This document shows positions 3,401-18,146 of a DNA stretch of 18,146 bases, in pieces (the first letter of the stretch is position 1; every line of letters starts with the position of its first letter). This DNA is from Thecamonas trahens ATCC 50062 (taxonomy: Eukaryota > Protista > Apusomonadida), in assembly GCF_000142905.1 (NCBI RefSeq), contig NW_013657610.1, positions 95,870-114,015 of the forward strand. The letters run 5' to 3'. The notes beneath the pieces are model-generated. The model saw nothing but the letters and a program-made list of their open reading frames with translations. It searched no databases and was not told where the DNA came from. A program made the position numbers and the translations under genes.

Positions 3401-3507
3401 NNNNNNNNNNNNNNNNNNNNNNNNCCCTGCCACCGCCACCACCACCACCACCACCATTACTCCGTCGCGCCAGTCGTGACCAGGTGGTCTCCGGCCCCGC
3501 AGCGTAG
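442..3507 (+). CDS. Multidomain protein: duplicated N-terminal helical (possibly winged-helix/LOTUS-like) module + EXD1/Egalitarian-like 3'-5' exonuclease domain + Ycf45/SpoIIIAA-like P-loop ATPase; 3' end uncertain because of the N gap
   Basis: Open from ATG 442 to the gap at 2949. Exonuclease motifs: ExoI LALDAEG (D 1513, E 1519), VIDIAVA, and WARPL...YAVGDVAHL (ExoIII, 1981-1995). ATPase motifs: LACLP...LGVDVGAP...VTDADV, GVPGVALRVS...GLTLAVG, then SILIVGPRRSGKTSLLRAVARR...HVLIVD (Walker A 2860-2883), in the Ycf45-family order. The frame after the gap is unknown (stop at 3479, 3507 or elsewhere). Confidence 0.8.
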   Translation: MSSSKLPPAYVELLEAVAQELARRAATSRDGQVRQAFPSKSILGTLGSRSKSVMQRVRSAVARDASATNLHSVLAQYGSAFGIEFDAETDSIALSTTLPPAMISQFRKKRPRPGSDAFDALLETAAQRLAAELASRQANAIPATELGARQEMVDIRAAYVAAGMLENYKLHSVLQAPPFASRFVIVKVGAGPGYEIRLRPALGSRSSSASLSTSSSFGSVSGGKAATARAISPAHGNAVDPYGRVAAVHGRAAHPAPRPTPFPDLYPSDAHLGLGDHGRRAMRLSGMFAEPHAATSTTSSSPSSSANGNSSQSSGGYNLAGAQGQAQAAPFSFVTRGTLHQFYAELDRLPPASMLALDAEGTLDAEQPTIPLVQVHLPAPVSQTYLFHEPTWDAEAAGAGTTGSMWDHLRVLVADAEFTLVVFDAARLAGALLATASPLDLGAGRTIHDARVIDIAVAACVVAGKRLPPTHGLNECLAAIGAGRNRFADVVPASAVRSATTWARPLLAEQATRYAVGDVAHLVAAAERAMASVSAVQALRIQAESLAATRAAVAARLAGSDAVTKTLAVGLDAAASGYVFGRLAGGGGGLTLLGEADSPLPDRSGVGSAGPPLPRQSQATPPPAAAIALACLPTHLAGPVAATIDAHGGLERVAALGVDVGAPIICTFAGGRGAAALAASSSVVTDADVAAILARLAMLQRAESAEAALAMTTSGELRAADERGTPAVAPVVYGGSVVGEASFGVPGVALRVSQLPPLVAGGGPGGLTLAVGHDWDAATLPAAVLLGDVCEGAASTRGGSESILIVGPRRSGKTSLLRAVARRAAARARHVLIVDXXXXXXXXXXXXXXXXXXXXXXXXXXXXXXXXXXXXXXXXXXXXXXXXXXXXXXXXXXXXXXXXXXXXXXXXXXXXXXXXXXXXXXXXXXXXXXXXXXXXXXXXXXXXXXXXXXXXXXXXXXXXXXXXXXXXXXXXXXXXXXXXXXXXXXXXXXXXXXXXLPPPPPPPPPLLRRASRDQVVSGPAA
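2949..3424. other. Assembly gap (476 N)
   Basis: Run of N characters. Confidence 1.
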
Positions 3508-3563
3508 CAAAGCCATCGATCCGATCTGGCGCATAGCATACGTCTCGGCCCCCCCCACATCTC

Positions 3564-3714
3564 GGCCAATTAGAGCAAGAAAGAAATGGCGCGAACGGTG
3601 GCCTTATGACCAACTCCCGCCTTTTTTTCCCCCTCCCCCCTTCCCTCCCTCCCTCCCTCCCTCCCCTTGTCTTTTTTGGCGGGAACCGACTCCGATTACC
3701 CGTTTCGCGCCAAA
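3564..3714. promoter_or_regulatory. Putative cell-cycle promoter: CCAAT box plus clustered E2F-type sites upstream of APC1
   Basis: GGCCAATTAG (CCAAT 3566-3570), TGGCGCGAA 3587-3595, TCCCGCC 3615-3621, TTTTGGCGGGAA 3674-3685 and TTTCGCGCCAAA 3703-3714. The last two closely match canonical E2F sites; the other two are partial. Function is inferred. Confidence 0.5.
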
Positions 3715-3914
3715 AAACTCGCCCACAGTCCCCTCCACCCCCGCCCTCACCCTCGTTCGGACGAGCCAAGTTGAGGAGAATGAGCAGCAGGCAGTGGCAG
3801 TGTGCGGGGCACTCAACGTGTGGTGGGGGAGAGAGACACAGGTCGCCGTACCCCCATATACATATACATACGCATACGCATACCGCACACCCTCCCTCCC
3901 TCCCGTGTCACCGC

Positions 3915-4586
3915 CACCTCGACCAAGTGGGTGACCTCGACCAAGTGGGTGACCTCGACCAAGTGGGTGACGTCGACCAAGTGGGTGACCTCGACCAAGT
4001 GGGTGACCTCGACCAAGTGGGTGACCTCGACCACGTAGACCAAGTCGGTGACGTCGACCACGTAGATCACCTCGACCACGTAGATCACCTCGACCACGTA
4101 GATCACCTCGACCACGTAGATCACCTCGACCACGTGGATCACCTCGACTACGTAGATCACCTCGACCACGTAGATCACCTCGACTACGTAGATCACCTCG
4201 ACCACGTAGATCACCTCGACTACGTAGATCACCTCGACCACGTAGATCACCTCGACTACGTAGATCACCTCGACCACGTAGATCACCTCGACCACGTAGA
4301 TCACCTCGACCACGTAGATCACCTCGACCACGTAGATCACCTCGACTACGTAGATCACCTCGACTACGTAGATCACCTCGACCACGTGGATCACCTCGAC
4401 TACGTAGATCACCTCGACCACGTGGATCACCTCGACTACGTAGATCACCTCGACCACGTAGATCACCTCGACTACGTAGATCACCTCGACCACGTAGATC
4501 ACCTCGACCACGTAGATCACCTCGACCACCTCGACCTCGACCTCGACAACCTCGACCTCGACCTCGACCACGACCGCCACGTCGAC
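3915..4586. repeat. 18-bp minisatellite with two unit types
   Basis: 7 copies of GACCAAGTGGGTGACCTC-type units (3921-4055, with one 9-bp half unit), then 26 copies of GAC(C/T)ACGT(A/G)GATCACCTC (4056-4523), decaying into GACCTC hexamers to ~4586. Confidence 0.97.
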
Positions 4587-4602
4587 AAAGCAGGTGACGG
4601 AC

Positions 4603-7600
4603 ATGATGTCGACGATCACGTGCCAAGTGCTGTATGAGGAGAGTGCGGTGGGCGGCAAGAGGCAGTACCTGAGCCACGGCCATGGCTGGACGAGCACGTC
4701 GAGCACATCGCGAACGTCAAGCAGCAGTGCCATGGCGAGCACTGGCTCGATGGCGACGGCAATGGCGACGGCGACAGCGACTCCGGCTGCACCGGCCCAC
4801 GCCGCCGCGGGCATGGGCATGGGCACGGGCGGTCATCCAGCCGGAGGCTACGGCCATGGCCATGCCGGCGAGTTGGCCCTGGTGGTGAGCGGCAACTGCG
4901 CCAGTGTCATGGCTGGTGCCCTCGTGGCTGCCTCGTACACCGTCCCGGCCGCCATCTCGCACGCCCTGTGGGTCTCCTTCCCGCGCCCGCTCCCCGGCCG
5001 CAGTGTCGGCGGTGATGCCGGCGGCAACGGGAGCATGGCCGCCGCAGCATGGTCGCCGCCCCGCTCCGGCCACTCGTTCCATGGCCCATCGCAGTCGCAT
5101 GTTCACCATGGCGACGACGAGGGCGATGGCGATGGCAGTGGCGGGCACGGCCCGGGCTCGTCGGGCGACGGAGGCCTCGTCACTGCGCTGGTGCTCCTCA
5201 CGGCGGCGGCGGCCCATGTGTACTACCCCACGGGACACGTCTACGAGGTTGTGCTCCCCTTTGCTGTGGCCGACGTGGCGGCGCTGCCGGTCGGCTTGCT
5301 CCTGCGGCGGGCGGCGGCGGCGGCGGAGGAGGCGGCGGCGGGCGCGGCGGCGCTGCCGTTCCTCTTCTCGCTCCTGCATCCGCTCGACGACGTCCGCCCG
5401 CTGGCGGCGCTCTCGCTCCACGGCGACGTTGTCTCGGACGCCTCGGTCAGTGTCCTCCTCGCGGCCTCCTCGCCGCCGCTGCTCCTCACTCACTCGGCCG
5501 GGCGGAGCGCGGGAGCCGGCAGTGCGCTCGACCTCTTCCTCCTCCGCCGCGCGCCGCCGGACACTCCGCCCGACGAGATCGAGCGCTCGCTGAGCGGCCT
5601 GGGGCGGCTCGGCATGGACATGGAAGAGGCGCAGAGCGAGGACGGGAGCGCGGGCAGCAGAGCGAGCCAGGGCAACGTCTCGGGCGTGAGCGGCGAGTCG
5701 GTCGACGCGCTCTACGCCGACGTCTATCTCGAGCACGTGTGGTCGTCGCCGTGGGCCGGCCTCGCCGCGCCGGCGCGCGCCTTTCTCACCCACGACGCCA
5801 ACGGCACGCTCGAACTCGCCCTTCTTGACCGCGAGGCGCAGGTTCTCACCGGCATCGCCTTTGAGCCGACGGCGCTGGCGGTGGCGTGGCAGGTGCCGGC
5901 CGTCGACGCCGCGCCCGTCCGCCTCGGCGGCCTCGACGCACTCGCCGTCGTCGCCCCGGGCGGCGGCCTCGTGCTCTACGTCGGCGGCACCCGGCTTGTC
6001 GACGTCGCCCTCCCGGCACCGCTCATCGGCAGCGGATGCGCAGCTGGCGGGCCGAACGAGTCGGCGCTCTCGCTCTCACCGGTCTCGATGGCCTCGGCCT
6101 CGTTCGACGCCTCGGGCCTCGGCATGGCCGGCGACGACGAGTGCGAGGCCGACGCCGAGGCCGGCAAGCTCGTCGCCCTCGCCGCAGCGGCCGGCTCGCG
6201 GCTGACGGTCGTCACCGCCCGCGGGCGCGCCTACCGCATCAACATCGAGCTCCCGCCGGCCTCGCCGCTCGCCGCCGCCGTCCTCGAGGTCCTCAGCACC
6301 ACCGTCTCACCTGCCTTTGCCCTCGCCCTCCGCCGCGAGCTCGTCGCCGCCCTCGCCCGCGCCACCGGCCCGGCGCCCAACCAGTGGCGCCTCCTAGCCG
6401 AGCTCCTTGTCGAGCTCCTTGCGCCGGTCACCCCGTCGTCGCCGACCACACCGGTCCGCCCGCGCGCCGACGACAGCGACGATCCGCTCGCGTGGCTGCT
6501 GACCGAGTCGGCAACGCACGCGGCGATGGGCGGCGGGTGCAGGCTGGGCGGACTCGGTGAGGCCGAGGACGGCAGTCTCAGCATCCGCGGCGCCGCCACC
6601 GGCAAGATGGCCAGGCGAGTGCCGTCGGCCGAGCTTGCGCCGGCGCTCAAGGGCTTGCACTTGCTGTACGAGGACTGCAAGCTCGATGTGCTGCGGTACG
6701 GCGAGCTGCAGCCGCTCGGCAAGCTGCTGGCGGCCCTGGCTGCGGCAGCCGGCGAGCACGGCGTGGGCTACGCCGAGGCATACGCCCGCGACGGGCTCGG
6801 CCGGTGGCCGGACGGCGGGATGGGCGCGGCAGGCGGAGCCGGAGAGGACCTCGGCCTTCCGCCGTCGATCCTCGCGTACCTGCAGACGATGGTCCGCACG
6901 CCGGACGCCGAGCTGGAGGCCTTCCCGCTGGTGGGCGGGACGGACGGCGTGTGCGAGACAAGCCGCAAGGTCCTGCACCTGTACGCCATCCTCACGCGGA
7001 GCCAGGGCGGGCGCTACGAGGTGTCTGCCGCCGAGCTGGCGGAGCGGGCGGCCGAGGCGCTCGAGTCGCACCTCTCAGCCATTTCGCTCTCGTTCCAGGC
7101 GTCGTTCTCGGGCGGCCTCGCGCCACGCTCGCCGGTCCTCCCGCTCTTCTCACCGGCGACGCCACGGGCGCGGTCGCCGGCGGGCGAGCCGCCGCTGGCC
7201 CACTCGGTTGTCCTCGCCCTCGCCGCCGAGGGCTTTACCCGCGACTCGCTCTCGTCGCTCCCTCCGGCTGTGGCGCTGCCGCTGCTCGAGGCGCTGCGCG
7301 AGGCGCGCGAGGACCCGCCGGCCGGCTGGCCCGCCGCCGCCTACGCCCTCATCGACCGCAACGACCTCGCCCGCCAGTCGGCCGGCGTCCCGCCCGAGCC
7401 GGCGTCGGCCGCCGCCGCCCCGTCGGCGACCTCGTTCGACACAGAGGCGACGTTTGCATCGCCGGCCGGCCCGGGCGCCCCGCCGGGCGCCCCGCTCCCG
7501 CCGCCGACCCTCATCACCCTCGCCCCGCCGGGCCTCACCGGCGCCCTGCCACGGAGCGCGAGCGCAGCAGCCGGAGCGGCGGCCTCCAGCGGCGCAGCAG

Positions 7601-10600
7601 CCGGCGCGCCGAGCGGCGGCGGTAGCCGGAGCGGCGACGACGGCGGAGCCGGCGGCAGTGGCGGCGGCAGTGGCGACGGCGACGGCGGCGCAGGCGGAGC
7701 TGGGAGCGAGGCGCGCGTCCCGCTCGGCACCGAGCTCGAGTCGCGGGTGGCGGCGATGCGGTTCTGCGGCGACGCGCGGGTTGCCGAGGTCCAGCGGCTG
7801 CTGACGTCGAGCGCGCCGGCGGCGCTACTGCTCCCGAGCGAGGCGGCGACGCTGAGCGACCATGAGCTCGTCGCGGCGCAGCAAAAGGCGCTGCTTGCGC
7901 TGGCGGAGCGGACGATGGCGCTGCCTGTCGGCCGCGGCATGTTCACCTTTGCCACGGCGGCGCCGATTGTGACCGAGACGCTGCCCATTCCGCCGCTGGT
8001 GCTCTCGGGCAAGGTGCCGGCGACCGGGGTGACGCTTGCGCTGGACACAGCGAGCGTGTCGAACGAGTTCACGCACTGGGCGCAGTTCCACAACGGCGTC
8101 GCGGCCGGGCTGCGGATCTCGCCGCGGGCGGCGCGGTTGTCGTCGACGTGGATCGTGTACAACCGGCCGGCGGAGCTCTCGCACTCGCACGCCGGCTTGC
8201 TGATGGCCATGGGCCTGCACGGGCACCTGGCCCGGCTGGACGTGACCAACGTCTTCTCGTACCTCTCGCAGTCGCACGAGGTCATCTCGGTGGCGGTGCT
8301 GCTGGGCCTGGCGGCGGCCAAGCGCGGGAGCATGGACACCTCGGTGGCCAAGATGCTCTCCATCCACGTCCCGTCGCTCCTCCCGCCGTCGGCCACCATG
8401 CTCGACGTCTCGTCGCTCGTCCAGACCGCCGCCCTCCTTGGCGTCGGCCTGCTCTTCCTCGGCTCGGCCCACCGCCGCATGACCGAGGTGCTCCTGGCCG
8501 AGATCGGCCGCCGCCCGGCGGCGTCGGAGCACATCAACGACCGCGAGGCCTACTCGCTCGCCGCCGGCCTCGGCCTTGGCCTGGTCACCCTCGGCCGCGG
8601 CGCCGACGCTGCCGGCCTCGCCGACCTCGCCATCGAGAACAGGCTGCACACGTTCATTGTCGGCGGCCGCGCCGACGAGGCTCCTGGCTCGGGCAGCGGG
8701 CTCAGCGGCGGGCCGGACGGCAGCGGGCGGAGCGGGAGCGGCAGCGGGCGGAGCGGCGCGGGCGGAGCTAGCGGGCGGAGCAGCGTCGGCGGGCTCGGCG
8801 GCAAAGCGATGGCCAACTCGCGGATCCGCGAAGGCGCGCGGGTCAACATCGACGTCACCGCGCCGGGCGCCACCCTCGCACTCGGGCTCATGTTCCTCAA
8901 GACCAACTCGGCGTCGGTGGCGGCACGGCTGGAGGTGCCGCGGACGCAGTTCCTGCTCGACTACGTCCGGCCGGACCTGCTGCTGTTGCGGGTCCTCGCC
9001 CGCAACCTCATCATGTGGGACGAGGTTGCGGCGAGCGAGGCCTGGCTCGACGCCCACCTCCCGCCGTTCATCGCCGCCCACGCCCCGCTCCGCCCGCGTG
9101 GCGGGAGTGGCGGCGGTGTTGCCGGCGGCGCCATCGACTACGCCGCCATGCTCCTGGCGTCCGACACCGACGAGGACGAGGACGAGGATGGGGACGGAGC
9201 GCCCAGGGATGGGAGCGAGGGTGGCGAGGGCGGCGATGGCGAGGGCGGGGGCGAGGACGGAGGGCGGCGGCAGCTGCCGTCGGTGGCCGACGTGGTCGCT
9301 GGCCTGCTCGGCGGGGGCGGCGGGAGCGGCGTCGACGGCGAGGGCCAAGCCGGAGCGGCCGGGGCTGTCGGCGGCGAGACCGATGTCGAGGCGCTGCAGG
9401 CGGCCTACGTCAACGTGGTGGCCGGGGCGTGCATGTCGGTCGGACTCAAGTACGCCGGCAGCGCGGCGGCGGAGGCGTACGAGCTGCTGCTGGGAAAGGT
9501 CGGATTCTTCCTCGACTTGGTGGCGGCGAGCGGCGCGAGCGGCGGCGGGAGCGGCAGCAGCAGCGGCAGTGCGGTGGACAAGGCGACGGCGGAGGCGTGC
9601 CTCTGCACGGCTGTGGTTGCGCTGGCGATGGTGATGGCCGGGAGCGGCAACGTGGGCGTGCTGCGGCTGGTGCGCAAGCTCCACGCAAGGACAGGCGTGG
9701 GCTACGGCTCGCACATGGCCATGGGCTCTGCGCTCGGCCTGCTATTCCTCGGCGGTGGGGCATACTCGCTCTCGACGAGCAAGGCGGCCATCGGGGCTCT
9801 CGTGGCGGCGTTCTTCCCGGTCTGGCCGGCATCGCCGAGCGACAACAAGTACCATCTGCAGGCCTTCCGCCACCTGTACGTGCTCGCGTTGGAGCGGCGG
9901 GTGCTGGAGGCGGTCGACGTCGACTCGGGCGCGGCGGTGTACGTGCCGGTCCAGCTGACGCTGCGCGGTAGCGACGGCCACGGGCCGGGAAGTGTGGCGG
10001 CGGTGACGCCGGCGCTGCTGCCGCCACGGGCGGTGCTCGCTGGCGTCGCCGTCGACTCGCCGCGCTACTGGGGCACATACATCGCCACGCCGGCGGCGAG
10101 CAGGGCGCTGGCACCGGCGGCACGGCTCATTGTGGAGCACGGCGTGCTGTACGTCAAGCGCAAGGCTGGGTACCTGGCGTACGCAACGGATCCGACCAAC
10201 GCGCGGTCGATGCTCTCGCGGGCGTTCCCGCAGAGACCGGCGGCGGCGCGGGTGGCGCCCGAGACGGACCTCACGCCGCCGGCCGAGCGCGCGCTGAGCC
10301 TCTTTACTGACTCGGCAGCCATGACTGCCTTTGCCGGCCACATGGCCGTCCCGCGGGCCGGTGAGCCGTGGACCGACTCGCACGCCTTTGCCGCCCGCGT
10401 CCTCTACGACGTGCTGACGGCGGAGAAGGTCGAGGTCCTCCCGGTTTATCTCGCGCTGTACGAGGCCGTCGGCGGGGTCGGCGCCGAGCTGGCAGCGGGC
10501 AAGCGGCTTGGCCCGGCGCGGGCGACGAGCCTGGCCGGCCTCGGCCTGCTCCGCGCCTGGTACGCCGCCGGCCCGCTGCGGCAGCTGCTGGAGCCGCGGT

Positions 10601-10860
10601 TCGTGGCCGCGATCCACGCGAGAATGAGCGACGTCCTCGCGCCGAATCCTCAGCTCGTCGCCGAGCTCGCGGCGTACTACCGTGGCGAGGCGAGAGTGCT
10701 GTCGGCGGCGGCGGCGGCGGTGGCAGGCTACTACGACATGCCCGGACAGGTTGTCCTGGGCGTGCTGCGGAAGCGGCTGGGATCCGAAGGCGCAGTGCGG
10801 GCGGCGGTGGCGGCCGTGGGAAGCGGGATCCCGTGGGTGTGGGTGGAGGCCATGGTGTAA
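4603..10860 (+). CDS. ANAPC1: Anaphase-promoting complex/cyclosome subunit 1
   Basis: About 2085 aa, uninterrupted. N-terminal motifs ELALVVSGN...SYTVPAAISHALWVSF and LFSLLHPLDDVRP. PC-repeat region motifs WAQFHNGVAAGLRI, HAGLLMAMGLHGHL, KMLSIHVP, REAYSLAAGLGLGLVTLG, NIDVTAPGATLALGLMFLKTN, YGSHMAMGSALGLLFLGGG and DNKYHLQAFRHLYVLA, all characteristic of APC1. First in-frame ATG is 4603 (4606 possible). Confidence 0.96.
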   Translation: MMSTITCQVLYEESAVGGKRQYLSHGHGWTSTSSTSRTSSSSAMASTGSMATAMATATATPAAPAHAAAGMGMGTGGHPAGGYGHGHAGELALVVSGNCASVMAGALVAASYTVPAAISHALWVSFPRPLPGRSVGGDAGGNGSMAAAAWSPPRSGHSFHGPSQSHVHHGDDEGDGDGSGGHGPGSSGDGGLVTALVLLTAAAAHVYYPTGHVYEVVLPFAVADVAALPVGLLLRRAAAAAEEAAAGAAALPFLFSLLHPLDDVRPLAALSLHGDVVSDASVSVLLAASSPPLLLTHSAGRSAGAGSALDLFLLRRAPPDTPPDEIERSLSGLGRLGMDMEEAQSEDGSAGSRASQGNVSGVSGESVDALYADVYLEHVWSSPWAGLAAPARAFLTHDANGTLELALLDREAQVLTGIAFEPTALAVAWQVPAVDAAPVRLGGLDALAVVAPGGGLVLYVGGTRLVDVALPAPLIGSGCAAGGPNESALSLSPVSMASASFDASGLGMAGDDECEADAEAGKLVALAAAAGSRLTVVTARGRAYRINIELPPASPLAAAVLEVLSTTVSPAFALALRRELVAALARATGPAPNQWRLLAELLVELLAPVTPSSPTTPVRPRADDSDDPLAWLLTESATHAAMGGGCRLGGLGEAEDGSLSIRGAATGKMARRVPSAELAPALKGLHLLYEDCKLDVLRYGELQPLGKLLAALAAAAGEHGVGYAEAYARDGLGRWPDGGMGAAGGAGEDLGLPPSILAYLQTMVRTPDAELEAFPLVGGTDGVCETSRKVLHLYAILTRSQGGRYEVSAAELAERAAEALESHLSAISLSFQASFSGGLAPRSPVLPLFSPATPRARSPAGEPPLAHSVVLALAAEGFTRDSLSSLPPAVALPLLEALREAREDPPAGWPAAAYALIDRNDLARQSAGVPPEPASAAAAPSATSFDTEATFASPAGPGAPPGAPLPPPTLITLAPPGLTGALPRSASAAAGAAASSGAAAGAPSGGGSRSGDDGGAGGSGGGSGDGDGGAGGAGSEARVPLGTELESRVAAMRFCGDARVAEVQRLLTSSAPAALLLPSEAATLSDHELVAAQQKALLALAERTMALPVGRGMFTFATAAPIVTETLPIPPLVLSGKVPATGVTLALDTASVSNEFTHWAQFHNGVAAGLRISPRAARLSSTWIVYNRPAELSHSHAGLLMAMGLHGHLARLDVTNVFSYLSQSHEVISVAVLLGLAAAKRGSMDTSVAKMLSIHVPSLLPPSATMLDVSSLVQTAALLGVGLLFLGSAHRRMTEVLLAEIGRRPAASEHINDREAYSLAAGLGLGLVTLGRGADAAGLADLAIENRLHTFIVGGRADEAPGSGSGLSGGPDGSGRSGSGSGRSGAGGASGRSSVGGLGGKAMANSRIREGARVNIDVTAPGATLALGLMFLKTNSASVAARLEVPRTQFLLDYVRPDLLLLRVLARNLIMWDEVAASEAWLDAHLPPFIAAHAPLRPRGGSGGGVAGGAIDYAAMLLASDTDEDEDEDGDGAPRDGSEGGEGGDGEGGGEDGGRRQLPSVADVVAGLLGGGGGSGVDGEGQAGAAGAVGGETDVEALQAAYVNVVAGACMSVGLKYAGSAAAEAYELLLGKVGFFLDLVAASGASGGGSGSSSGSAVDKATAEACLCTAVVALAMVMAGSGNVGVLRLVRKLHARTGVGYGSHMAMGSALGLLFLGGGAYSLSTSKAAIGALVAAFFPVWPASPSDNKYHLQAFRHLYVLALERRVLEAVDVDSGAAVYVPVQLTLRGSDGHGPGSVAAVTPALLPPRAVLAGVAVDSPRYWGTYIATPAASRALAPAARLIVEHGVLYVKRKAGYLAYATDPTNARSMLSRAFPQRPAAARVAPETDLTPPAERALSLFTDSAAMTAFAGHMAVPRAGEPWTDSHAFAARVLYDVLTAEKVEVLPVYLALYEAVGGVGAELAAGKRLGPARATSLAGLGLLRAWYAAGPLRQLLEPRFVAAIHARMSDVLAPNPQLVAELAAYYRGEARVLSAAAAAVAGYYDMPGQVVLGVLRKRLGSEGAVRAAVAAVGSGIPWVWVEAMV

Positions 10861-10871
10861 AGGAAGCACGG

Positions 10872-13800
10872 TTAGGGGTTGCTGGAGGATGAGGCGATGC
10901 GGTTGAGACGGCGCAAGAGGTCCCCGGGCTTCGGCACGCGCCGCGGGACCCTCCTGCGTTTCGGCTTGTCAAAGATCGCGTTGATGTCCGAGACGGCGCG
11001 TTCGCTCCGCCGTGAGCCAGCAGCCAAGTCATGAAAGACGTCTTCCGCAAAGCGAAGCAGCTGGTTCTGGTCATGCGAATTGGCCGGCAGAAGCTGGTTC
11101 AAGAGCGCCTCTACCTGACCCTCAGGCATAAAGAGCGACTCGTCATCGATAAATCCGGCGATGATGAGAGCCTCCAGCGCCCGCTGTTCCACGGCTTCGG
11201 CGACTGTGTCATCGGTGAGATCCTTGTCGAGATACAACCCGAAGAGCGGACTGGCAGCAAAGGCGAGCTGGCCACGTACAGCCCGAACGATGCATCGCCG
11301 GGCCACCTCGACCTCACAGGCAAGAGCGAGTGCGAAGAGGACCGTGACAGGCTGCATCGTAAGGTTGTGGATCCGCGGCTTGTCTGGCGACCACGTCGTG
11401 TCCTTGGTCAGCTTGTTGAGTTGCAGATCGACCAAGACATCGCCCAGCTTGGCAATGGCGACGAGGGCGGCAATGTCGGTACGATGCTTGGCCGCCAGTG
11501 ACTGCAGGTCCTTGTCGCTAGGTAGGTCAAACTCGCCCGACCAAGTCGGCTCCTTGCCCAGGAGCTGCGTCAAGGTATCGACAGCTTCGTCCTTCTGCAG
11601 CGCAACTTCCACAACACTTTCGTCGCCAAGCCGAAACAGCGGCTTGCAGGTGAGCACCAGGCGATGGCGAAGATTCTTAGCGAAGAGACGGTTGAAAAAG
11701 TCATGGACCAAGTTGTCGCGCACGTTCTCCACAATCACGAGCCACGGGCGAGGGCTTGTGGCGCACAAGGCTTTCAAGTCGCCGTTTTTGCGACCATTGC
11801 GGGAGAAGATGATCTTATCAATGAGGGCCTCTCTCAGCGCACAAGGCACCTGCGAATCCGACTGTGCATGGCGGAGGTCACCTATATCCATGTCGAGCCA
11901 GATGGTAAGATAGTCCTTGGCCAGCTCACTGTTGGCAAGCCAAAGAGCCAACGCTGTCTTGCCGCTCTTGCTCTTGCCGCGGAGCACGAAGACGCGCTTC
12001 TCTTTCAAAGCAGAGGCTACCTTCGAGCGCAGCCGATCCGGAATGGCAACGTGAGAGTCTGGCAGGTCTGGGACGGAGCCGGTGCGAGAGAAGCTGATGC
12101 CGACATACTCGAGGACGCCGGCGACGTACTCGCAGATCCACTCTGTCGGCCTTCTGGTGCGGCCGCTGATCGAGCACAGACCCCATCTCGACAGCCGCAA
12201 CGCGATATTCATGCAGCGGTCACGAATATGACCCCGGTATTCCAGCTGGGCTGGGCTGGCCAACTCGAGGTCTACAGCACCGCCGTTCCACTTCCTCTTC
12301 CGACTTGCGTGCTCGGCACCAGTCATCGACTCGTCGAGGAACTTGATCAGCGCTGGCTCGGTCGCCTGGTCTCGAGGCGCATGGAGCAGGCGACAGAACT
12401 CCTCAAACGGCAAGTTCTCATGGTGGAAAACAGGTACTGGAACAACCGCCGGGTTCGCAAGTGCTTCGTCCATCTCAGCAAGCGCAGCTGGCGATGCCAG
12501 CGAGTACGGCGTGACCGAGACCACCGCCACCCGCGACGAACGCACGACTGCGCGTAGGTCTTCGTAATCATCCTTCCTTGTACACTGCTGGGCACCAAGC
12601 GAGAACTCGTCCAAGAAGGTGGACACGTTGTGTTCTTCCAAGTAGTCTTTGATCTCGCCCATGTAGCCCTTGCTCAGGCCGCCGTGGATCAGCATCACGT
12701 CGCGCTCGTATGACGCTGCCACGCTCTTCGGCAGCCACGAGTTTGCCTGGCCGAGCTCCCAGGCAATGGCACGTGCAATGGCAAGCTCGATCTCGTCACG
12801 GGAAGGGTGATCAGTACTGGATCCGGCTCTGGAAACGTTGAGCGAGTGGGGCTGGTACGACCAAAGCTTCCAAGCGCTGGCGACGAGCTCAATTTCCTTG
12901 ACATCGCTCGCTGAGAGGTCGACGTGGTTCTGGATCTGCAAGCTCCAGTCGCGACCAGCACGCTCGACAGAGGAGGCAGGTTGCCACTGGGGGCCAACCT
13001 CAACGACGAGCAGCAGATTGGAGTTGATGGCAACGACCACGCGAGAGTCAAAGGCAAGCCTATCACGGGCTTGTTGAGGATCTGAACTCGATCCGCCTGT
13101 AGCAGCGATGGCGTCTGTCCAGGCCTTGACCGCACGCTGCCGGAGGCGCCAAGCACGATCTTCGGCGAGGGCAGAGGTGTCCTCAACCTCTGAGATCCAC
13201 AGCAGCTGTTGCTTGGCGGTCTGGAACTCCATGGGCGGGCCATCAAAGCCGAGCGAAGCAAGGAGGATGTCGAGCTTGGGGCGATCCTCGGTTGTGGACA
13301 CCGGCGTGTCGACGAGGTCGTGAGTCACGACTGCATTGCCATCATCCTCCACCTTGTCATGGCCCGCAGTCGAGTCGGAAGGAACATCATGCTCTTTGAG
13401 CGGCTCGAGTGAGCTCGACGAGACTATCGCGCTGGAGTCGTCTGGCACAGGTTCATCGCCAGCCTTGCCTTTGTCCACGGCGCCAAATGCGGTGATGGCA
13501 AAGATTCGATGGAGGTTGTGCAGAACGTAGCGGTCGTGAGAGACGTGGAGGAGGCCTGCGCGGACGACGCGATCTAGCTCAAAGTGAGGAAGTGCCGGTG
13601 ACGACCGCAGACCACCATCGGCTTTGTAGATGTCGTGGAGAGCATCCTGAGCGGTAACGGGGAGTGCGTCGTACGCCAGCTGCATGACAGCGGAGCAAAG
13701 AGCGGCAGTGCTGTCGTCATCGGACGAGGTGTCGGAGGCGGTGGCACAGACGACACTGTGAGCTTCGACAACTCGCTCCGGAAAGTCAGAGATGAATCGG

Positions 13801-16676
13801 TCGAGGATACTTAGCACCATGGGGTTACCGGCGACCTCGTTCACGAGGCTGGACAACAGATCTTGTTCGTCAAGAGCGGACGCCGACCGAGCTAGGAGAG
13901 CGCCCCCGTGCTCTGGTGAGAGGCCGCGGATGCCAATGACGTCGCCAAGCTCCAGCTCATCAGGAGCAAGCACGCGTGTCGTGACGGCAACGCAGTGCCC
14001 GGGCGAGCTGGTCCAGGCAGAAGTAACGGTCTTGACGAGCTCAAGCGTGACGGCGTCGTCCAGGACCAAGGCGACGTGTCGGCCACGAAGGTTGTATGAG
14101 GCTGAGATATCCCTGAGCGCGCTGGCTAGCGCGTCGGCCCCGAGGTTGCCCACAGGCAAAACAGACTCGCCAAAGCCATTGACGAGCAAGTGCCAGAGGC
14201 CGACGTCGAGCGCGTCGTACTGGCTTGCATCAAACCAAACAATTTGGAACTTGGAGGCGAGAGCCGGTTCCGCAAGCGCGGCCGCCAGCATGAGCGACTT
14301 GCCGCAGCCGCTTGGACCTGTGATGGCAAGCAACCGGGCATCGGAGCTGAGCTGGTGGACAACGTGCTGTTGCTCATCGCGGACGATAAAGTTGTCTGGG
14401 AGTGGCGGCGGTGGGAGCACCGGTGGCGGCGGAAGGTCGAGGGCGTGGACGACATGGAGACCGAGGTCACGGACCGCCGCCTTGGGGTCGATGTACCAGT
14501 TGTAAGTCGAGGCGTCGGGTGATGCAGCAAGGTCGCGAAGGAGTCGGACGGCGCCGGCATGGTAAGAACCATCGCTCAAAGCCCAGGAAGTCTGGGCGTC
14601 GGAATCGAGGGAAAGCGAGCGATAAATGATGTCCACAGCAGTGTCACGGTCGGAGAAGAACTTGGCAACGAATCGTGGGAGGATCTCGCGGTCGATAAAG
14701 AGCGGGATGTGCCGAGAAGAGGATGAGGCAAGCGCAAGTCTGGAGGCGGCAAGCGCGCGGCCAGATACGAGGAGAGAACGCGAGACGAGGACGGCGTATA
14801 CAGACGCAGACGGAAGGTCCCTTGGGTCCGCGGCACGAGAGTAGGCAATAATGAGCGAGGGGAAGCGGGCGAGGATTGAGTGGCGCAGCCGCCAGGCAGT
14901 GTCCTCGTTGTTTGGGGCGCAGATGATGGCGATGTCAATGGTGGCCGAGCGAGACTGGCTGGGTGATGCGGGACGCCAGACGCGCAGAGAAGAGTCGGAG
15001 GACCATGAGGCCAGTGTGATGACGTCGGGGCGAGACGCATATGAAGGCGCAATCACACCACTGATGTGGCCCGTGTGGCCTTGTAGCACTTGGTGAAAGG
15101 CTGTGGAAGATGTATAGCCCAGAGAGGACGTCCCGTCGTCCGCAGGAAACCACTCCCAGATCGTCCTGTCCGTCGACCACGAAACCAGGACAGGCAGCTG
15201 GCCATCTGCACTCGGCAGCGCAACCACACCCTCCACATTGCCGGTGTGGCCCTCCAGCACCTCACAGGAGGTCCTGTCCGCGGTGTACCGCATGGCGCCC
15301 GTCCCGTCGTCCGCAGCATGCCACACCCGGATCGTCCTGTCCTCCGACCACGAGACCAGGACGGGCAGCTGGCCATTCGCACTCGGCAGCGCAATCACAC
15401 CCTGCACATCACTGGTGTGGCCCTCCAGCACCTCACAGGAGGCCCTGTCCGCGGTGTACCGCATGGCGCCCGTCCCGTCGTCCGCAGCATGCCACACCCG
15501 GATCGTCTTGTGGTTCGACCACGAGACCAGGACAGGCAGCTGGCCATCCGCACTCGGCAGCGCAAGCACACCCCACACATCGTCGGTGTGGCCCTCCAGC
15601 ATCTCACAGAATGCACTGTCCGCGGTGTACCGCATGGCGCCCATCCCGTCGTCCGCAAGATGCCACACCCGGATCGTGTTGTCCTTCGACCACGAGACCA
15701 GGACAGGCAGCTGGCCATCCGCACTCGGCAGCGCAATCACACCCCGCACATTGCTGGTGTGGCCCTCCAGCACCTCACAGGAGGCCCTGTCCGCGGTGTA
15801 CCGCATGGCGCCCGTCCCGTCGTCCGCAGCATGCCACACCCGGATCGTCTTGTCCCCCGACCACGAGACCAGGACAGGCAGCTGGCCATCCGCACTCGGC
15901 AGCGCAAGCACACCCCACACATCGTCGGTGTGGCCCTCCAGCATCTCACAGAATGCACTGTCCGCGGTGTACCGCATGGCGCCCATCCCGTCGTCCGCAA
16001 GATGCCACACCCGGATCGTGTTGTCCTTCGACCACGAGACCAGGACAGGCAGCTGGCCATCCGCACTCGGCAGCGCAATCACACCCCGCACATTGCTGGT
16101 GTGGCCCTCCAGCACCTCACAGGAGGCACTGTCCGCGGTGTACCGCATGGCGCCCGTCCCGTCGTCCGCAGCATGCCACACCCGGATCGTGTTGTCTCTC
16201 GACCACGAGACCAGGACAGGCAGCTGGCCATCCGCACTCGGCAGCGCAATCACACCCCGCACATCGCTGGTGTGGCCCTCCAGCACCTCCATGCGTTCAC
16301 CAGTTTGCACGTCAAGTACGTCCACATTCTTTCCACATCCACCAGCAACCAGCGAGCCACCGATGTTGATGACTTTTTCGTACGAGCCAACAAAGCGAAA
16401 GCGCTCAGCACCACGATGCGCGACAGGGTCCACGGCTCTCGATGGAATGAGAGCCCCAGACGGGACATCTTCGCGCACAGCAGCAACCAGGTCCTTCACG
16501 GCTTTGGACGCGTTGTCATAGGCAAGTCGGGCGACAAGCTCGGTCTCGATGTGCGACGTACCGCTCTCAATGATTTGACGTGAGAGCGACAGCGCACGCT
16601 CGACCTCGTCAACGTCTTTGGCTCCTTCAACGGCCGAGGCGCACAACACAACGCAGATCATTGAGGAGGCCACCAA
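10872..16676 (-). CDS. C-terminal segment of an NLR-like STAND protein: WD40 repeats + TIR-like + NB-ARC + TIR-like + TIR + degenerate NB-ARC
   Basis: 1934-codon ORF. GH...W WD40 repeats at 16280-14976. Second NTPase: Walker A GPSGCGKS 14318-14295 with ALVLDDA, VAVTTR, GNPMVL and LHNL. TIR: DVMLIH...VSTFLDEFSL...SSRVAVVSVTPYSLASPAALAEM...VPVPVFH at 12701-12420. Third Walker A GKSKSGKT at 11978-11955. It has no convincing start of its own and continues the upstream ORF across a frame change. Confidence 0.85.
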   Translation of the reverse strand: MVASSMICVVLCASAVEGAKDVDEVERALSLSRQIIESGTSHIETELVARLAYDNASKAVKDLVAAVREDVPSGALIPSRAVDPVAHRGAERFRFVGSYEKVINIGGSLVAGGCGKNVDVLDVQTGERMEVLEGHTSDVRGVIALPSADGQLPVLVSWSRDNTIRVWHAADDGTGAMRYTADSASCEVLEGHTSNVRGVIALPSADGQLPVLVSWSKDNTIRVWHLADDGMGAMRYTADSAFCEMLEGHTDDVWGVLALPSADGQLPVLVSWSGDKTIRVWHAADDGTGAMRYTADRASCEVLEGHTSNVRGVIALPSADGQLPVLVSWSKDNTIRVWHLADDGMGAMRYTADSAFCEMLEGHTDDVWGVLALPSADGQLPVLVSWSNHKTIRVWHAADDGTGAMRYTADRASCEVLEGHTSDVQGVIALPSANGQLPVLVSWSEDRTIRVWHAADDGTGAMRYTADRTSCEVLEGHTGNVEGVVALPSADGQLPVLVSWSTDRTIWEWFPADDGTSSLGYTSSTAFHQVLQGHTGHISGVIAPSYASRPDVITLASWSSDSSLRVWRPASPSQSRSATIDIAIICAPNNEDTAWRLRHSILARFPSLIIAYSRAADPRDLPSASVYAVLVSRSLLVSGRALAASRLALASSSSRHIPLFIDREILPRFVAKFFSDRDTAVDIIYRSLSLDSDAQTSWALSDGSYHAGAVRLLRDLAASPDASTYNWYIDPKAAVRDLGLHVVHALDLPPPPVLPPPPLPDNFIVRDEQQHVVHQLSSDARLLAITGPSGCGKSLMLAAALAEPALASKFQIVWFDASQYDALDVGLWHLLVNGFGESVLPVGNLGADALASALRDISASYNLRGRHVALVLDDAVTLELVKTVTSAWTSSPGHCVAVTTRVLAPDELELGDVIGIRGLSPEHGGALLARSASALDEQDLLSSLVNEVAGNPMVLSILDRFISDFPERVVEAHSVVCATASDTSSDDDSTAALCSAVMQLAYDALPVTAQDALHDIYKADGGLRSSPALPHFELDRVVRAGLLHVSHDRYVLHNLHRIFAITAFGAVDKGKAGDEPVPDDSSAIVSSSSLEPLKEHDVPSDSTAGHDKVEDDGNAVVTHDLVDTPVSTTEDRPKLDILLASLGFDGPPMEFQTAKQQLLWISEVEDTSALAEDRAWRLRQRAVKAWTDAIAATGGSSSDPQQARDRLAFDSRVVVAINSNLLLVVEVGPQWQPASSVERAGRDWSLQIQNHVDLSASDVKEIELVASAWKLWSYQPHSLNVSRAGSSTDHPSRDEIELAIARAIAWELGQANSWLPKSVAASYERDVMLIHGGLSKGYMGEIKDYLEEHNVSTFLDEFSLGAQQCTRKDDYEDLRAVVRSSRVAVVSVTPYSLASPAALAEMDEALANPAVVPVPVFHHENLPFEEFCRLLHAPRDQATEPALIKFLDESMTGAEHASRKRKWNGGAVDLELASPAQLEYRGHIRDRCMNIALRLSRWGLCSISGRTRRPTEWICEYVAGVLEYVGISFSRTGSVPDLPDSHVAIPDRLRSKVASALKEKRVFVLRGKSKSGKTALALWLANSELAKDYLTIWLDMDIGDLRHAQSDSQVPCALREALIDKIIFSRNGRKNGDLKALCATSPRPWLVIVENVRDNLVHDFFNRLFAKNLRHRLVLTCKPLFRLGDESVVEVALQKDEAVDTLTQLLGKEPTWSGEFDLPSDKDLQSLAAKHRTDIAALVAIAKLGDVLVDLQLNKLTKDTTWSPDKPRIHNLTMQPVTVLFALALACEVEVARRCIVRAVRGQLAFAASPLFGLYLDKDLTDDTVAEAVEQRALEALIIAGFIDDESLFMPEGQVEALLNQLLPANSHDQNQLLRFAEDVFHDLAAGSRRSERAVSDINAIFDKPKRRRVPRRVPKPGDLLRRLNRIASSSSNP
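14976..16280 (-). repeat. Intragenic tandem array of 171-bp (57-aa) WD40 units
   Basis: Units start at 16280, 16109, 15938, 15767, 15596, 15425 and 15254 (near-identical; the 7th diverges in its second half), plus a divergent 8th at 15083. Confidence 0.97.
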
Positions 16677-18146
16677 GCGAGTCGTCTGCGCGGGCTTTCA
16701 TCCATGGCCAGGAGAGAGCAACGGCAACGGCAGCATGGTTCGCTCCGGCTGCAATCAGGTGGGAAATACCGTGGGTGACGATCCAATCGGAGGCAGTGCC
16801 AGAGGTCATTGCCGTCTTAGCGGACTCTGGTGTGGCGCCAGGCGGAGGCACCCCGGCGACAACGGCGAGGTGACGGACAGGAAGGGAAGGGATGTCGTCA
16901 AAGCACACCTCTAGCCGATGGCGAATGTAGTCGAGGTGCAGATCGTGCAGCTCGACTACGGTTATGGTGCCGCCATTCGTGGCAACGACGCGCAGCAACG
17001 ACGTGTTGGCGAGGGCATCGAGGGCCGCAGCAAAGTCAATATCGTCTTCTGGGACTGTGGCGCGGAAGTTGGCGACGTCGATGGGCGCGTCTGAAGGAAA
17101 GACGCCGAGCATGGCGTAAATGGCGAGTGCCATCGGACGGTCGAGGTCGTCGATGCTGCGGAGGGTCCATGTGATGATATCAAAGATGTGGGCGTACTTG
17201 GCGTCGGTGCCGCCTTCTGACTTGCGGTGCTTGTGGAAAGCACGCTTGGAGGCCGAATCAAAGTTGGCAACAGCGGCGTCAAGCGCAGCCTCGCCAGAAA
17301 TGGACGAGCCAAGGACGGCGAGGGCGAGGGCATGGCCACGGCAAAAGGTCGCGAGGGAGACGATGCGGGGATCGTTGAGAGCAAGGGTGTTTGCCCACTC
17401 AGGTGAGCCCTTGGCGAGGTAGTTGCGAAGGACAACAGCAGCGTCGTCCGGGCCAAAGGTATCAAGCTTGATGGAGGAGGCAGAGCTGGTAGCAACAGCG
17501 GCGTTGCGCGAGGTGACGAGGACGGCATGCGGGGCTGCGATGTGGTTGGTGAAGACGGAGGCCTGGGGGGTGGTCCAAACATCGTCGAGGATGAGCAGGA
17601 TGCGGGTGCCGGCGTCGGCGAGGGCCCGGGTCTTGGCAGCAAGGATATGTTGGAGATCGTCGAGGTTGGCACGGGGGCCTATGTCACAACCAAGGCCGTG
17701 CTCGAGAAGGTGAGCCATGGAGCTGACTAGATCGGCGTTGGACGTATTGTCCTCATCAAGTGAGAGCCAGAAGACGGAGAAGACCGAGGTGATGGCGGGA
17801 TGGATGGCGACATCGGCAGCGAGTGACGACTTGCCGACGCCACCGAGCCCGCTGACACCAACGACTGAGACGTTGTTCGCACCGATAAGCGCGTCAATGA
17901 CCGCAGCGCGAGTGTCAGGGAGCGGGTAGTACTCGGATGGGTTAGGTGGCGGCGGCATGGGTGAGGGGCGGAGGGGTGAGCTGGGAACAATGGCCTGGAT
18001 GCGGTCGGCAAGATCGTCGAGCATGTCAACCACGCTGTCGCGAGCCGGGGAGTACGGAGCGAGGCCGCGCTCGAGGAGGGCGTAGAGAGTGCCGATGCGG
18101 GCGACTTTGAGCTCGGGCGTGAGTTCATCGTGTTCCCAGAGATCCG
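16627..18146 (-). CDS. N-terminal segment (5'-partial) of the same STAND protein: APAF-1-like NB-ARC domain and helical domain
   Basis: The frame stays open past 18033 to the window edge (DLWEHDELTPELKVARIG...). Motifs: Walker A GLGGVGKS 17850-17827, Walker B LLILDDVW 17598-17575, VLVTSRN, CRGHALAL (GLPL-like), LGVFPSD, LHDL (MHD-like, 16950-16939), then HGISHLIAAG...WPWMKAR...LLNDL (APAF1 helical-domain-like). Confidence 0.85.
   Translation of the reverse strand, partial: DLWEHDELTPELKVARIGTLYALLERGLAPYSPARDSVVDMLDDLADRIQAIVPSSPLRPSPMPPPPNPSEYYPLPDTRAAVIDALIGANNVSVVGVSGLGGVGKSSLAADVAIHPAITSVFSVFWLSLDEDNTSNADLVSSMAHLLEHGLGCDIGPRANLDDLQHILAAKTRALADAGTRILLILDDVWTTPQASVFTNHIAAPHAVLVTSRNAAVATSSASSIKLDTFGPDDAAVVLRNYLAKGSPEWANTLALNDPRIVSLATFCRGHALALAVLGSSISGEAALDAAVANFDSASKRAFHKHRKSEGGTDAKYAHIFDIITWTLRSIDDLDRPMALAIYAMLGVFPSDAPIDVANFRATVPEDDIDFAAALDALANTSLLRVVATNGGTITVVELHDLHLDYIRHRLEVCFDDIPSLPVRHLAVVAGVPPPGATPESAKTAMTSGTASDWIVTHGISHLIAAGANHAAVAVALSWPWMKARADDSLGGLLNDLRCVVRLGR

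Follow-up and report, generated by a model that had tools for sequence, protein, structure and literature searches.

Does the end of contig NW_013657610.1 of Thecamonas trahens ATCC 50062 (Apusomonadida; RefSeq assembly GCF_000142905.1) encode one NLR-like protein in which further TIR-NOD (nucleotide-binding oligomerization domain) units follow the WD40 sensor, or are its parts held together by chance, by decay or by the assembly? The window, which is the whole stretch of DNA analyzed, comprises 18,146 nucleotides (G000:C70:95870-114015) and reaches the end of contig C70 at position 18146. Its minus strand carries, at 10872-18146, a coding region with 2,423 codons inside the window and one frame change, as stated in a preliminary description of this DNA, which had joined more than 2400 amino acids across a single break and placed TIR-NOD units after a WD40 sensor. 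A protist NLR-like gene of this kind was indeed found, with these units after the sensor in one open frame: T. trahens AMSG_11190, modeled by NCBI as a single gene and annotated "uncharacterized protein, partial" [Thecamonas trahens ATCC 50062], with 2,359 residues. The locus is probably the inner edge of a subtelomeric gene family, where a multi-copy NLR-like 5' part and a single-copy TIR-NOD 3' part form one long intronless coding region. The reading frames and the 5' part are as follows.

16627-18146, minus strand: open reading frame (ORF) A, ending at a TGA at 16627, its 5' side open to the end of the window and the contig
10872-16676, minus strand: ORF B, 1,934 codons in another frame than ORF A, with its stop at 10872-10874
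16629-16630, minus strand: frame break, a TT pair with one T too many, giving the TGA stop in the frame of ORF A
17920-17964, minus strand: Pro-rich linker 1, directly before the first P-loop (translation; aligned with linkers 2 and 3)
17281-17907, minus strand: NB-ARC1, the NOD of module 1 (Pfam NB-ARC, E 3e-17, 63.1 bits, cutoff 23.5)
16302-17280, minus strand: helical region between NB-ARC1 and WD40 (translation), where a winged-helix and a helical domain are expected, with LHD at 16942-16944
14967-16301, minus strand: WD40 array of eight 57-residue units (Pfam WD40)

Database and domain searches were performed with ORF A and ORF B separately, not with a joined protein. In module 1, the motifs that mark a member of the NB-ARC family were all present (GLGGVGKS, LILDDV, VTSR and LHD), with the Walker A Lys at 17830-17832, the Walker B Asp at 17584-17586 and TSR at 17506-17508. 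The order of NB-ARC1 and then eight WD40 units, also given in the preliminary description, was borne out by Pfam (NB-ARC at 63 bits, and WD40) and by the table of 57-residue units. NACHT scored 18.9 bits, under its cutoff of 26.7, versus 63 bits for NB-ARC. The Pfam scan of the gene yielded no leucine-rich repeat (LRR) match, the sensor being WD40, and the same scan of 16302-16676, a part of the helical region, yielded no match. Tandem Repeats Finder (TRF) reported a period of 171 in the array, with 6.8 copies and 91% matches. Units 1 to 7 were near-identical, or homogenized, apart from a few hypervariable codons; from the middle of unit 7 through unit 8, the sequence was divergent and single-copy. 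A higher-order 342-bp repeat was also seen at 15426-16109, where the pair of units 2-3 is almost identical to the pair of units 4-5.

The gene's first 3.1 kb (window 15047-18146) is repeated in about 20 genome copies with 84-93% DNA identity. Family copies sit within a few kilobases of contig ends or on small contigs, and their N-terminus points outward. A further TIR upstream of the window had been thought probable in the preliminary description; the sister copies do carry an N-terminal TIR, and the contig of the present copy stops at 18146. Of the tripartite NLR layout, the NOD and the WD40 array are seen in this copy and the N-terminal TIR in its sisters. Two subtypes of the N-terminal TIR can be told apart in the family by the motif of the first strand (L006, L009, L019 and L027 vs. 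L004 and L005).

In the 13 sister copies with a readable end, the frame closes about 100 codons past the array with a common tail, and compared with these only the present copy carries modules 2 and 3. Its DNA homology to the family ends inside WD40 unit 7, at about 15129-15181; past this point the frame runs on through half of unit 7, unit 8, about eight linker residues, the first TIR-like domain (TIR-like 2) and everything after it. No second copy of the 3' 4.1 kb exists in the genome. New here is the extension past the array, a one-off in this copy; module 1 is a family member. The tails of the sister copies were also considered as remnants of TIR-like 2, and this was rejected, with local alignment z values of at most 1.9 against shuffles and DNA similarity ending at about 15129-15181.

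The stretch past the array contains 0 stops in 1,362 codons, and the other five frames contain 21-48 each. All segments of the gene share a coding-type pattern of GC content at the three codon positions (GC1/GC2/GC3) and similar codon use. ORF B has Met codons at residues 6, 1149 and 1328 and none from residue 462 to 796, so TIR-like 2 lacks an ATG of its own. The gap between the last WD40 blade and the first strand of TIR-like 2 is about eight residues, and this junction lies in single-copy, gap-free DNA, so that it cannot have been created by the collapse of two repeats. Module 2 consists of the following features.

14436-14945, minus strand: TIR-like 2, TIR fold, with Ala at the position of the catalytic Glu (14745-14747)
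14391-14432, minus strand: Pro-rich linker 2 (translation; alignment with linkers 1 and 3)
13467-14390, minus strand: NB-ARC2, the NOD of module 2 (Pfam NB-ARC, 30-34 bits; 34.4, E 1.8e-8, cutoff 23.5)

NB-ARC2 was confirmed as an NB-ARC domain. It exceeded the Pfam cutoff, and the motifs of NB-ARC members GPSGCGKS, LVLDDA, VTTR and GNPMVL were present, with the Walker A Lys at 14298-14300, the Walker B Asp at 14058-14060, TTR at 13974-13976 and GNPMVL at 13827; the MHD position reads LHN (13515-13517). Structure models of modules 2 and 3 were built from aligned T. trahens TIR-NB-ARC sequences and had a mean predicted local distance difference test score (pLDDT) of 51-52. In the low-confidence model of NB-ARC2, the best match was Apaf-1 (Z 16.9, 286 residues), followed by CED-4 (Z 16.1, root-mean-square deviation 3.6) and NRC2 (Z 15.3), and Foldseek matched RPP1 (4e-10).

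The TIR-like domain ahead of NB-ARC2 had also been claimed earlier, and this claim stood in part: a Pfam scan at E 10 yielded no TIR match, and support came from profile and fold comparisons. Against a T. trahens TIR profile, hhalign scored 39.2 (P 2.6e-5), with shuffles at 12.5 +/- 1.9, about 14 standard deviations lower, and the language-model features of the domain fell among TIR clusters in the atlas (0.93). Residues 9-178 of its model matched the Arabidopsis TIR 3jrn with Z 13.2 and a root-mean-square deviation of 3.1 over 143 residues, and the RPS4/RRS1 TIR with Z 12.5. A Glu in the alpha-C helix of TIR domains is needed for NADase activity. The data support a TIR fold by remote homology for TIR-like 2, which is predicted to be non-catalytic from the Ala at the Glu position.

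Between modules 2 and 3, and within module 3, the following features were recognized.

13281-13466, minus strand: acidic low-complexity linker, preceding the middle region
12735-13280, minus strand: middle region, about 180 residues, with no confident fold
12099-12710, minus strand: TIR3 and helical extension (Pfam TIR_2), candidate catalytic Glu at 12474-12476
12039-12074, minus strand: Pro-rich linker 3 (hhalign alignment with linker 1; multi-unit alignment)
11406-12038, minus strand: third P-loop NTPase (NOD3), very divergent and STAND-like, with nSTAND3 on the P-loop part
10872-11405, minus strand: helical C-terminal tail and stop (translation; low pLDDT; polymorphic)

The TIR ahead of the third NTPase was upheld. 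TIR3 scored 32.5 bits with Pfam TIR_2 in the context of the ORF and 26.1 as a separate piece (cutoff 28), and its model matched the SARM1 TIR (Z 12.2) and the RPP1 TIR (Z 11.8). The candidate Glu lines up with the AEA motif of the family TIRs. By alignment and model, TIR3 is a true TIR that keeps the predicted catalytic Glu. Among the N-terminal TIR subtypes of the family, TIR3 is closer to that of C22, C97, C67 and C125 (41% identity to P0004).

The third NTPase had been called an NB-ARC, and this did not hold: NOD3 yielded no NB-ARC match in Pfam even at E 10, and only nSTAND3 matched, over 56 of 155 profile positions (34.8 bits in the context of the ORF, 24.2 as a piece, cutoff 27.2). Its Walker A Lys is at 11958-11960, the Walker B motif reads VIVEN (Glu at 11727-11729), TCK stands in place of TTR (11643-11645), and no MHD-like motif was found. 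Against the T. trahens NB-ARC profile, hhalign scored 37.8 (shuffles 14.6 +/- 2.3) over 63 columns covering the linker and P-loop only. The model of NOD3 matched Dark (Z 11.8), NRC2 (Z 11.7) and Apaf-1 (Z 10.4), with ORC/Cdc6 (Z 10.7) and RFC (Z 9.9) close behind, and pLDDT was below 45 beyond model residue 430 of module 3. NOD3 is best described, from motifs and model, as a very divergent STAND/AAA+-like P-loop NTPase.

For the second TIR-like region, proposed between NB-ARC2 and TIR3, less remained. The middle region had no Pfam match, no atlas match and a model pLDDT below 45, and a weak collinear signal was obtained against the TIR profile (hhalign 24.0, shuffles 12.5 +/- 2.4, probability 5%). 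It is possibly, at best, a decayed TIR remnant.

The three units were collinear over their full length, in the order TIR, helical linker, Pro-rich stretch, P-loop, Walker B and hhhT[ST][RK], and the Pro-rich linker noticed before each P-loop was reproduced in an alignment of the three linkers. The three-unit alignment had 11 invariant columns, among them a Trp in the helical extension, a Trp in the strand after the P-loop and a His before hhhT[ST][RK]. Common descent of the TIR-linker-NOD unit type is therefore plausible on alignment grounds. The serial duplication of a TIR-NB-ARC unit that had been suggested is, by sequence divergence, not recent. Identity to the NODs of module 1 and the family was 24-28% for NB-ARC2 and 16-22% for NOD3, and TIR3 shared 36-38% with the family TIRs. 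The NOD tree gave no resolution; the long branches of modules 2 and 3 measure 1.3 and 3.0 changes per site. Given these identities and branches, an old TIR-NOD fusion or an internal duplication of similar antiquity is the better reading of the layout. Judged by sequence, modules 2 and 3 are old relatives of the T. trahens TIR-linker-NOD cassette, not recent copies of module 1.

The cassette of TIR plus helical linker occurs in T. trahens in several layouts, including ankyrin repeats-kinase-TIR, ankyrin (ANK)-TIR-NB-ARC and stand-alone TIR-NB-ARC, the last represented by gene L024 (C6:287000-296999). Loci with the cassette are listed below, with no strand given. One of them, L025, has a long open frame with a TIR followed by an unidentified C-terminal region.

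C1:66000-75999
C10:1-9000
C26:3000-12999 (L025)
C70:64000-73999
C6:287000-296999 (L024)

When modules 2 and 3 were used to search the T. trahens genome for paralogues, only TIR and NB-ARC similarity of 28-38% was found. A word-indexed protein search with modules 2 and 3 returned their own NCBI model, AMSG_11190, or nothing; phmmer with module 3 against 1.8 billion representative proteins returned T. trahens TIRs only and no relative of NOD3; two metagenome contig scans found no relatives of modules 2 and 3; and nothing useful for these modules came from Protein Data Bank (PDB) sequence searches, PADLOC or NCBIfam.

The frame break at 16629/16630 separates NB-ARC1 from the rest of the gene as assembled. 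This stretch is present in 11 sister copies, all of which lack one of the two Ts and stay in frame, and the copy on C64 is identical to the window over 91 nt around the break, apart from the extra T. NCBI model AMSG_11190 skips the break by a 28-nt "intron" that corresponds to sequence coding in the sister copies. Four read runs were used as contigs: X1, a second T. trahens data set; X3, from the same organism; and two metagenomes, X2 and X7. Contigs of all four runs left out one base at 16629/16630. In X1 and X3, the contigs bearing the deletion account for all depth spanning the break; these contigs may derive from sister copies. No contig was shown with the extra T, which is thus without positive support, and we lean towards an assembly error.

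Contigs of X1, X2 and X7 also hold the unique part of the gene at about 98-99% identity. X2 and X7 are an estuary metagenome and a marine metagenome, and close relatives of the sequenced strain therefore occur there. The differences listed (14 of 137) include only one indel in the single-copy stretch, a CAG inserted in frame behind 11017. This insertion and a group of residue-changing differences around it, at 11008-11054, were seen in X2, X3 and X7, and both forms of the gene's tail were seen in X3, suggesting two alleles. The last 48 nt of the gene have a 90% match at G000:C35:358126-358173, some 1.3 kb downstream from the sister copy on C35; the match could reflect a shared 3' element or a chance effect of low complexity.

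Several observations weigh against one continuous, conserved coding region. A real frame break would sever NB-ARC1 from all that follows it. No contig of the four runs bridges 14944-15100, so that the join between the array and the single-copy part is supplied by the assembly; comparable gaps in coverage are found elsewhere in the same low-depth runs. None of the four runs is on record as RNA. Four of the six variants listed in module 2 and the middle region change a residue, which in this tiny sample (14 of 137 differences listed) does not point to strong constraint. Modules 2 and 3 show signs of decay or strong divergence, including loss of the catalytic Glu, LHN for LHD, VIVEN, the lack of an MHD-like motif in module 3 and an unrecognizable middle region. 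Confidence is low in both structure models (pLDDT about 51), which lean to the TIR-NB-ARC fold because the input alignment consisted of TIR-NB-ARC relatives. Modules 2 and 3 had no relatives outside this genome, and conservation therefore cannot be shown.

The main rival explanation draws on several of these points. A family copy may have been joined in frame to an older local gene by ectopic recombination between WD40 arrays at a chromosome end, leaving a chimera or pseudogene in decay, its product unused and the frameshift its first visible lesion. The homology breakpoint inside WD40 unit 7, the presence of the extension in this copy only, the degenerate catalytic and switch motifs of modules 2 and 3, and the frameshift at 16629/16630 are all as expected from such an event, and frameshifts and gaps are frequent in the subtelomeric sister copies. 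However, 1,362 stop-free codons at 16-28% identity to module 1 argue for long-term translation downstream, the indel polymorphism of the tail is in frame, and the frameshift may be an assembly error, as the X1 and X3 contigs spanning it are all without the extra T. We consider a decaying chimera unlikely, though it has to be kept in view.

Alternatively, the region could consist of two or three expression units in one frame with internal starts, for instance at Met 1149 of ORF B, which would give a WD40-less TIR-NOD protein, or at Met 6 if the frameshift is real, and these would act as linked partner genes. Stand-alone TIR-NB-ARC genes do exist in the genome (L024), Met codons are available at residues 6, 1149 and 1328 of ORF B, and a real frameshift would oblige ORF B to use an internal start. 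Yet no stop lies between the units, no Met precedes TIR-like 2 and the junction from WD40 to TIR is very short (about eight residues), which makes separate units improbable. A misjoin, in which the array and NB-ARC1 of another subtelomere were attached to a gene also starting with WD40 repeats, is suggested by the stretch 14944-15100 covered by no contig of the four runs, by a contig that ends inside a repeat and by sequence upstream of about 15129 repeated about 20 times at 84-93%, but it is very improbable, because unit 8, half of unit 7 and the WD40-to-TIR-like junction lie in single-copy, gap-free DNA, so that family-type WD40 repeats stand before the downstream units no matter which copy the remainder comes from, and because coverage holes of similar size occur elsewhere in these low-depth runs.

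If the region is one coding unit composed of the multi-copy and single-copy parts, its product would be an NLR-type switch. Ligand binding at the hypervariable face of the WD40 propeller would release NB-ARC1, and the released NB-ARC1 would undergo nucleotide-dependent oligomerization. Oligomerization would bring TIR domains together for NAD+ cleavage or signaling, leading to cell death or defense. The appended units would contribute two TIRs, one of them catalytic and the other non-catalytic, and two further NODs; these may serve as built-in partners, regulators or an extra supply of TIRs. These steps are proposed because they are established for Apaf-1, plant TNLs and TIR enzymes.

Module 2 combines an intact-looking switch (Walker A and B, TTR and GNPMVL) carrying LHN with a non-catalytic TIR, and module 3 combines a catalytic-type TIR with a degenerate NOD. 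NADase activity needs an asymmetric TIR pair. In the boldest form of the proposal, the gene is intact, the extra T being an assembly error, and one chain of 2,700 residues would form a self-contained receptor network: WD40 and NB-ARC1 would sense the ligand, the appended units would act as helper or executor, and TIR-like 2 and TIR3 would supply the asymmetric pair for NADase activity, like an RRS1/RPS4-type pair fused within one protein, here in a single-celled relative of the animals and fungi. The reading as a fused sensor and helper is speculation drawn from the domain order, and we rate the complete network as rather a long shot.

Inward of the gene lies APC1 (anaphase-promoting complex subunit 1; window 4594-10860, plus strand, 2,088 codons), which is oriented towards the NLR-like gene; 12 nt separate the stop codons of these convergent genes. 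GC3 is about 0.70 in the NLR-like gene versus 0.90 in APC1, the first core-genome gene inward of the subtelomeric family. The gene region is free of N gaps; the sole gap in the window (2949-3424, 476 N) explains much of the seemingly low GC content of the bin 3001-4000.

Animals and fungi together have the apusomonads as their sister group, and apusomonad NLR-like genes therefore bear on the origin of intracellular immune and cell-death receptors in those groups. Beside APC1, the gene marks the boundary between a fast-evolving subtelomeric receptor family and the core genome, and it illustrates how new receptor layouts are built by array recombination or gene fusion. If real and expressed, the gene would provide an example from nature, outside plants, of a multi-NOD receptor in a single chain, with a mid-chain sensor and both a catalytic and a non-catalytic TIR downstream, and a compact model for the cooperation of NOD modules. 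If it is a decaying chimera, it would be ordinary subtelomeric debris. In the literature searched, we found no description of a WD40-based three-NOD receptor in a protist and no paper linking Thecamonas with NB-ARC or NLR genes.

Among known receptors, the likeness to Apaf-1, Dark and CED-4 lies in the NB-ARC, the helical domain and the WD40 propellers, and Apaf-1 and CED-4 gave the best structure matches of NB-ARC2. They differ in having a CARD effector, one NOD and non-homogenized WD40 repeats, with nothing after the sensor. Fungal HET-E/NWD receptors resemble the T. trahens family in their near-identical WD40 units, which differ at few codons, occur in many copies and are candidates for non-self recognition. 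Unlike the NB-ARC and TIR of the T. trahens gene, in which NACHT stayed below its threshold, these fungal NLRs combine NACHT with HET or another effector (PMC5658179).

Plant receptors come closer in layout. In grape and poplar, TNLT, TNLN, TNLTN and TNLTNL arrangements have been listed (PMC3782705), RPP2A is a functional TNTNL (PMC3782705), and wheat WTN1, a protein with tandem NB-ARC domains, is needed for resistance (10.1101/2024.08.30.610185). The suggestion that TIR-NB modules after the sensor depart from all known receptors was thus too strong. Like the T. trahens gene, the atypical plant TIR-NLRs have more than one TIR and more than one NB-ARC per chain, and TNLTN and TNLTNL have TIR-NB after the repeat sensor; these cases are mostly annotation only, and RPP2A is not sensor-first. 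The T. trahens gene differs in having WD40 and not LRRs, which sets it apart from the plant TNL family, as well as in lacking a C-JID and in having three NODs, and the kinship is at the level of domain families only. WTN1 likewise has two NB-ARC domains in one functional chain and shows that multi-NOD NLRs can work, but it has LRRs, adjacent NODs and no TIR described. Within T. trahens itself, module 1 is a member of the TIR-NB-ARC-WD40 family, whose sister copies are without modules 2 and 3.

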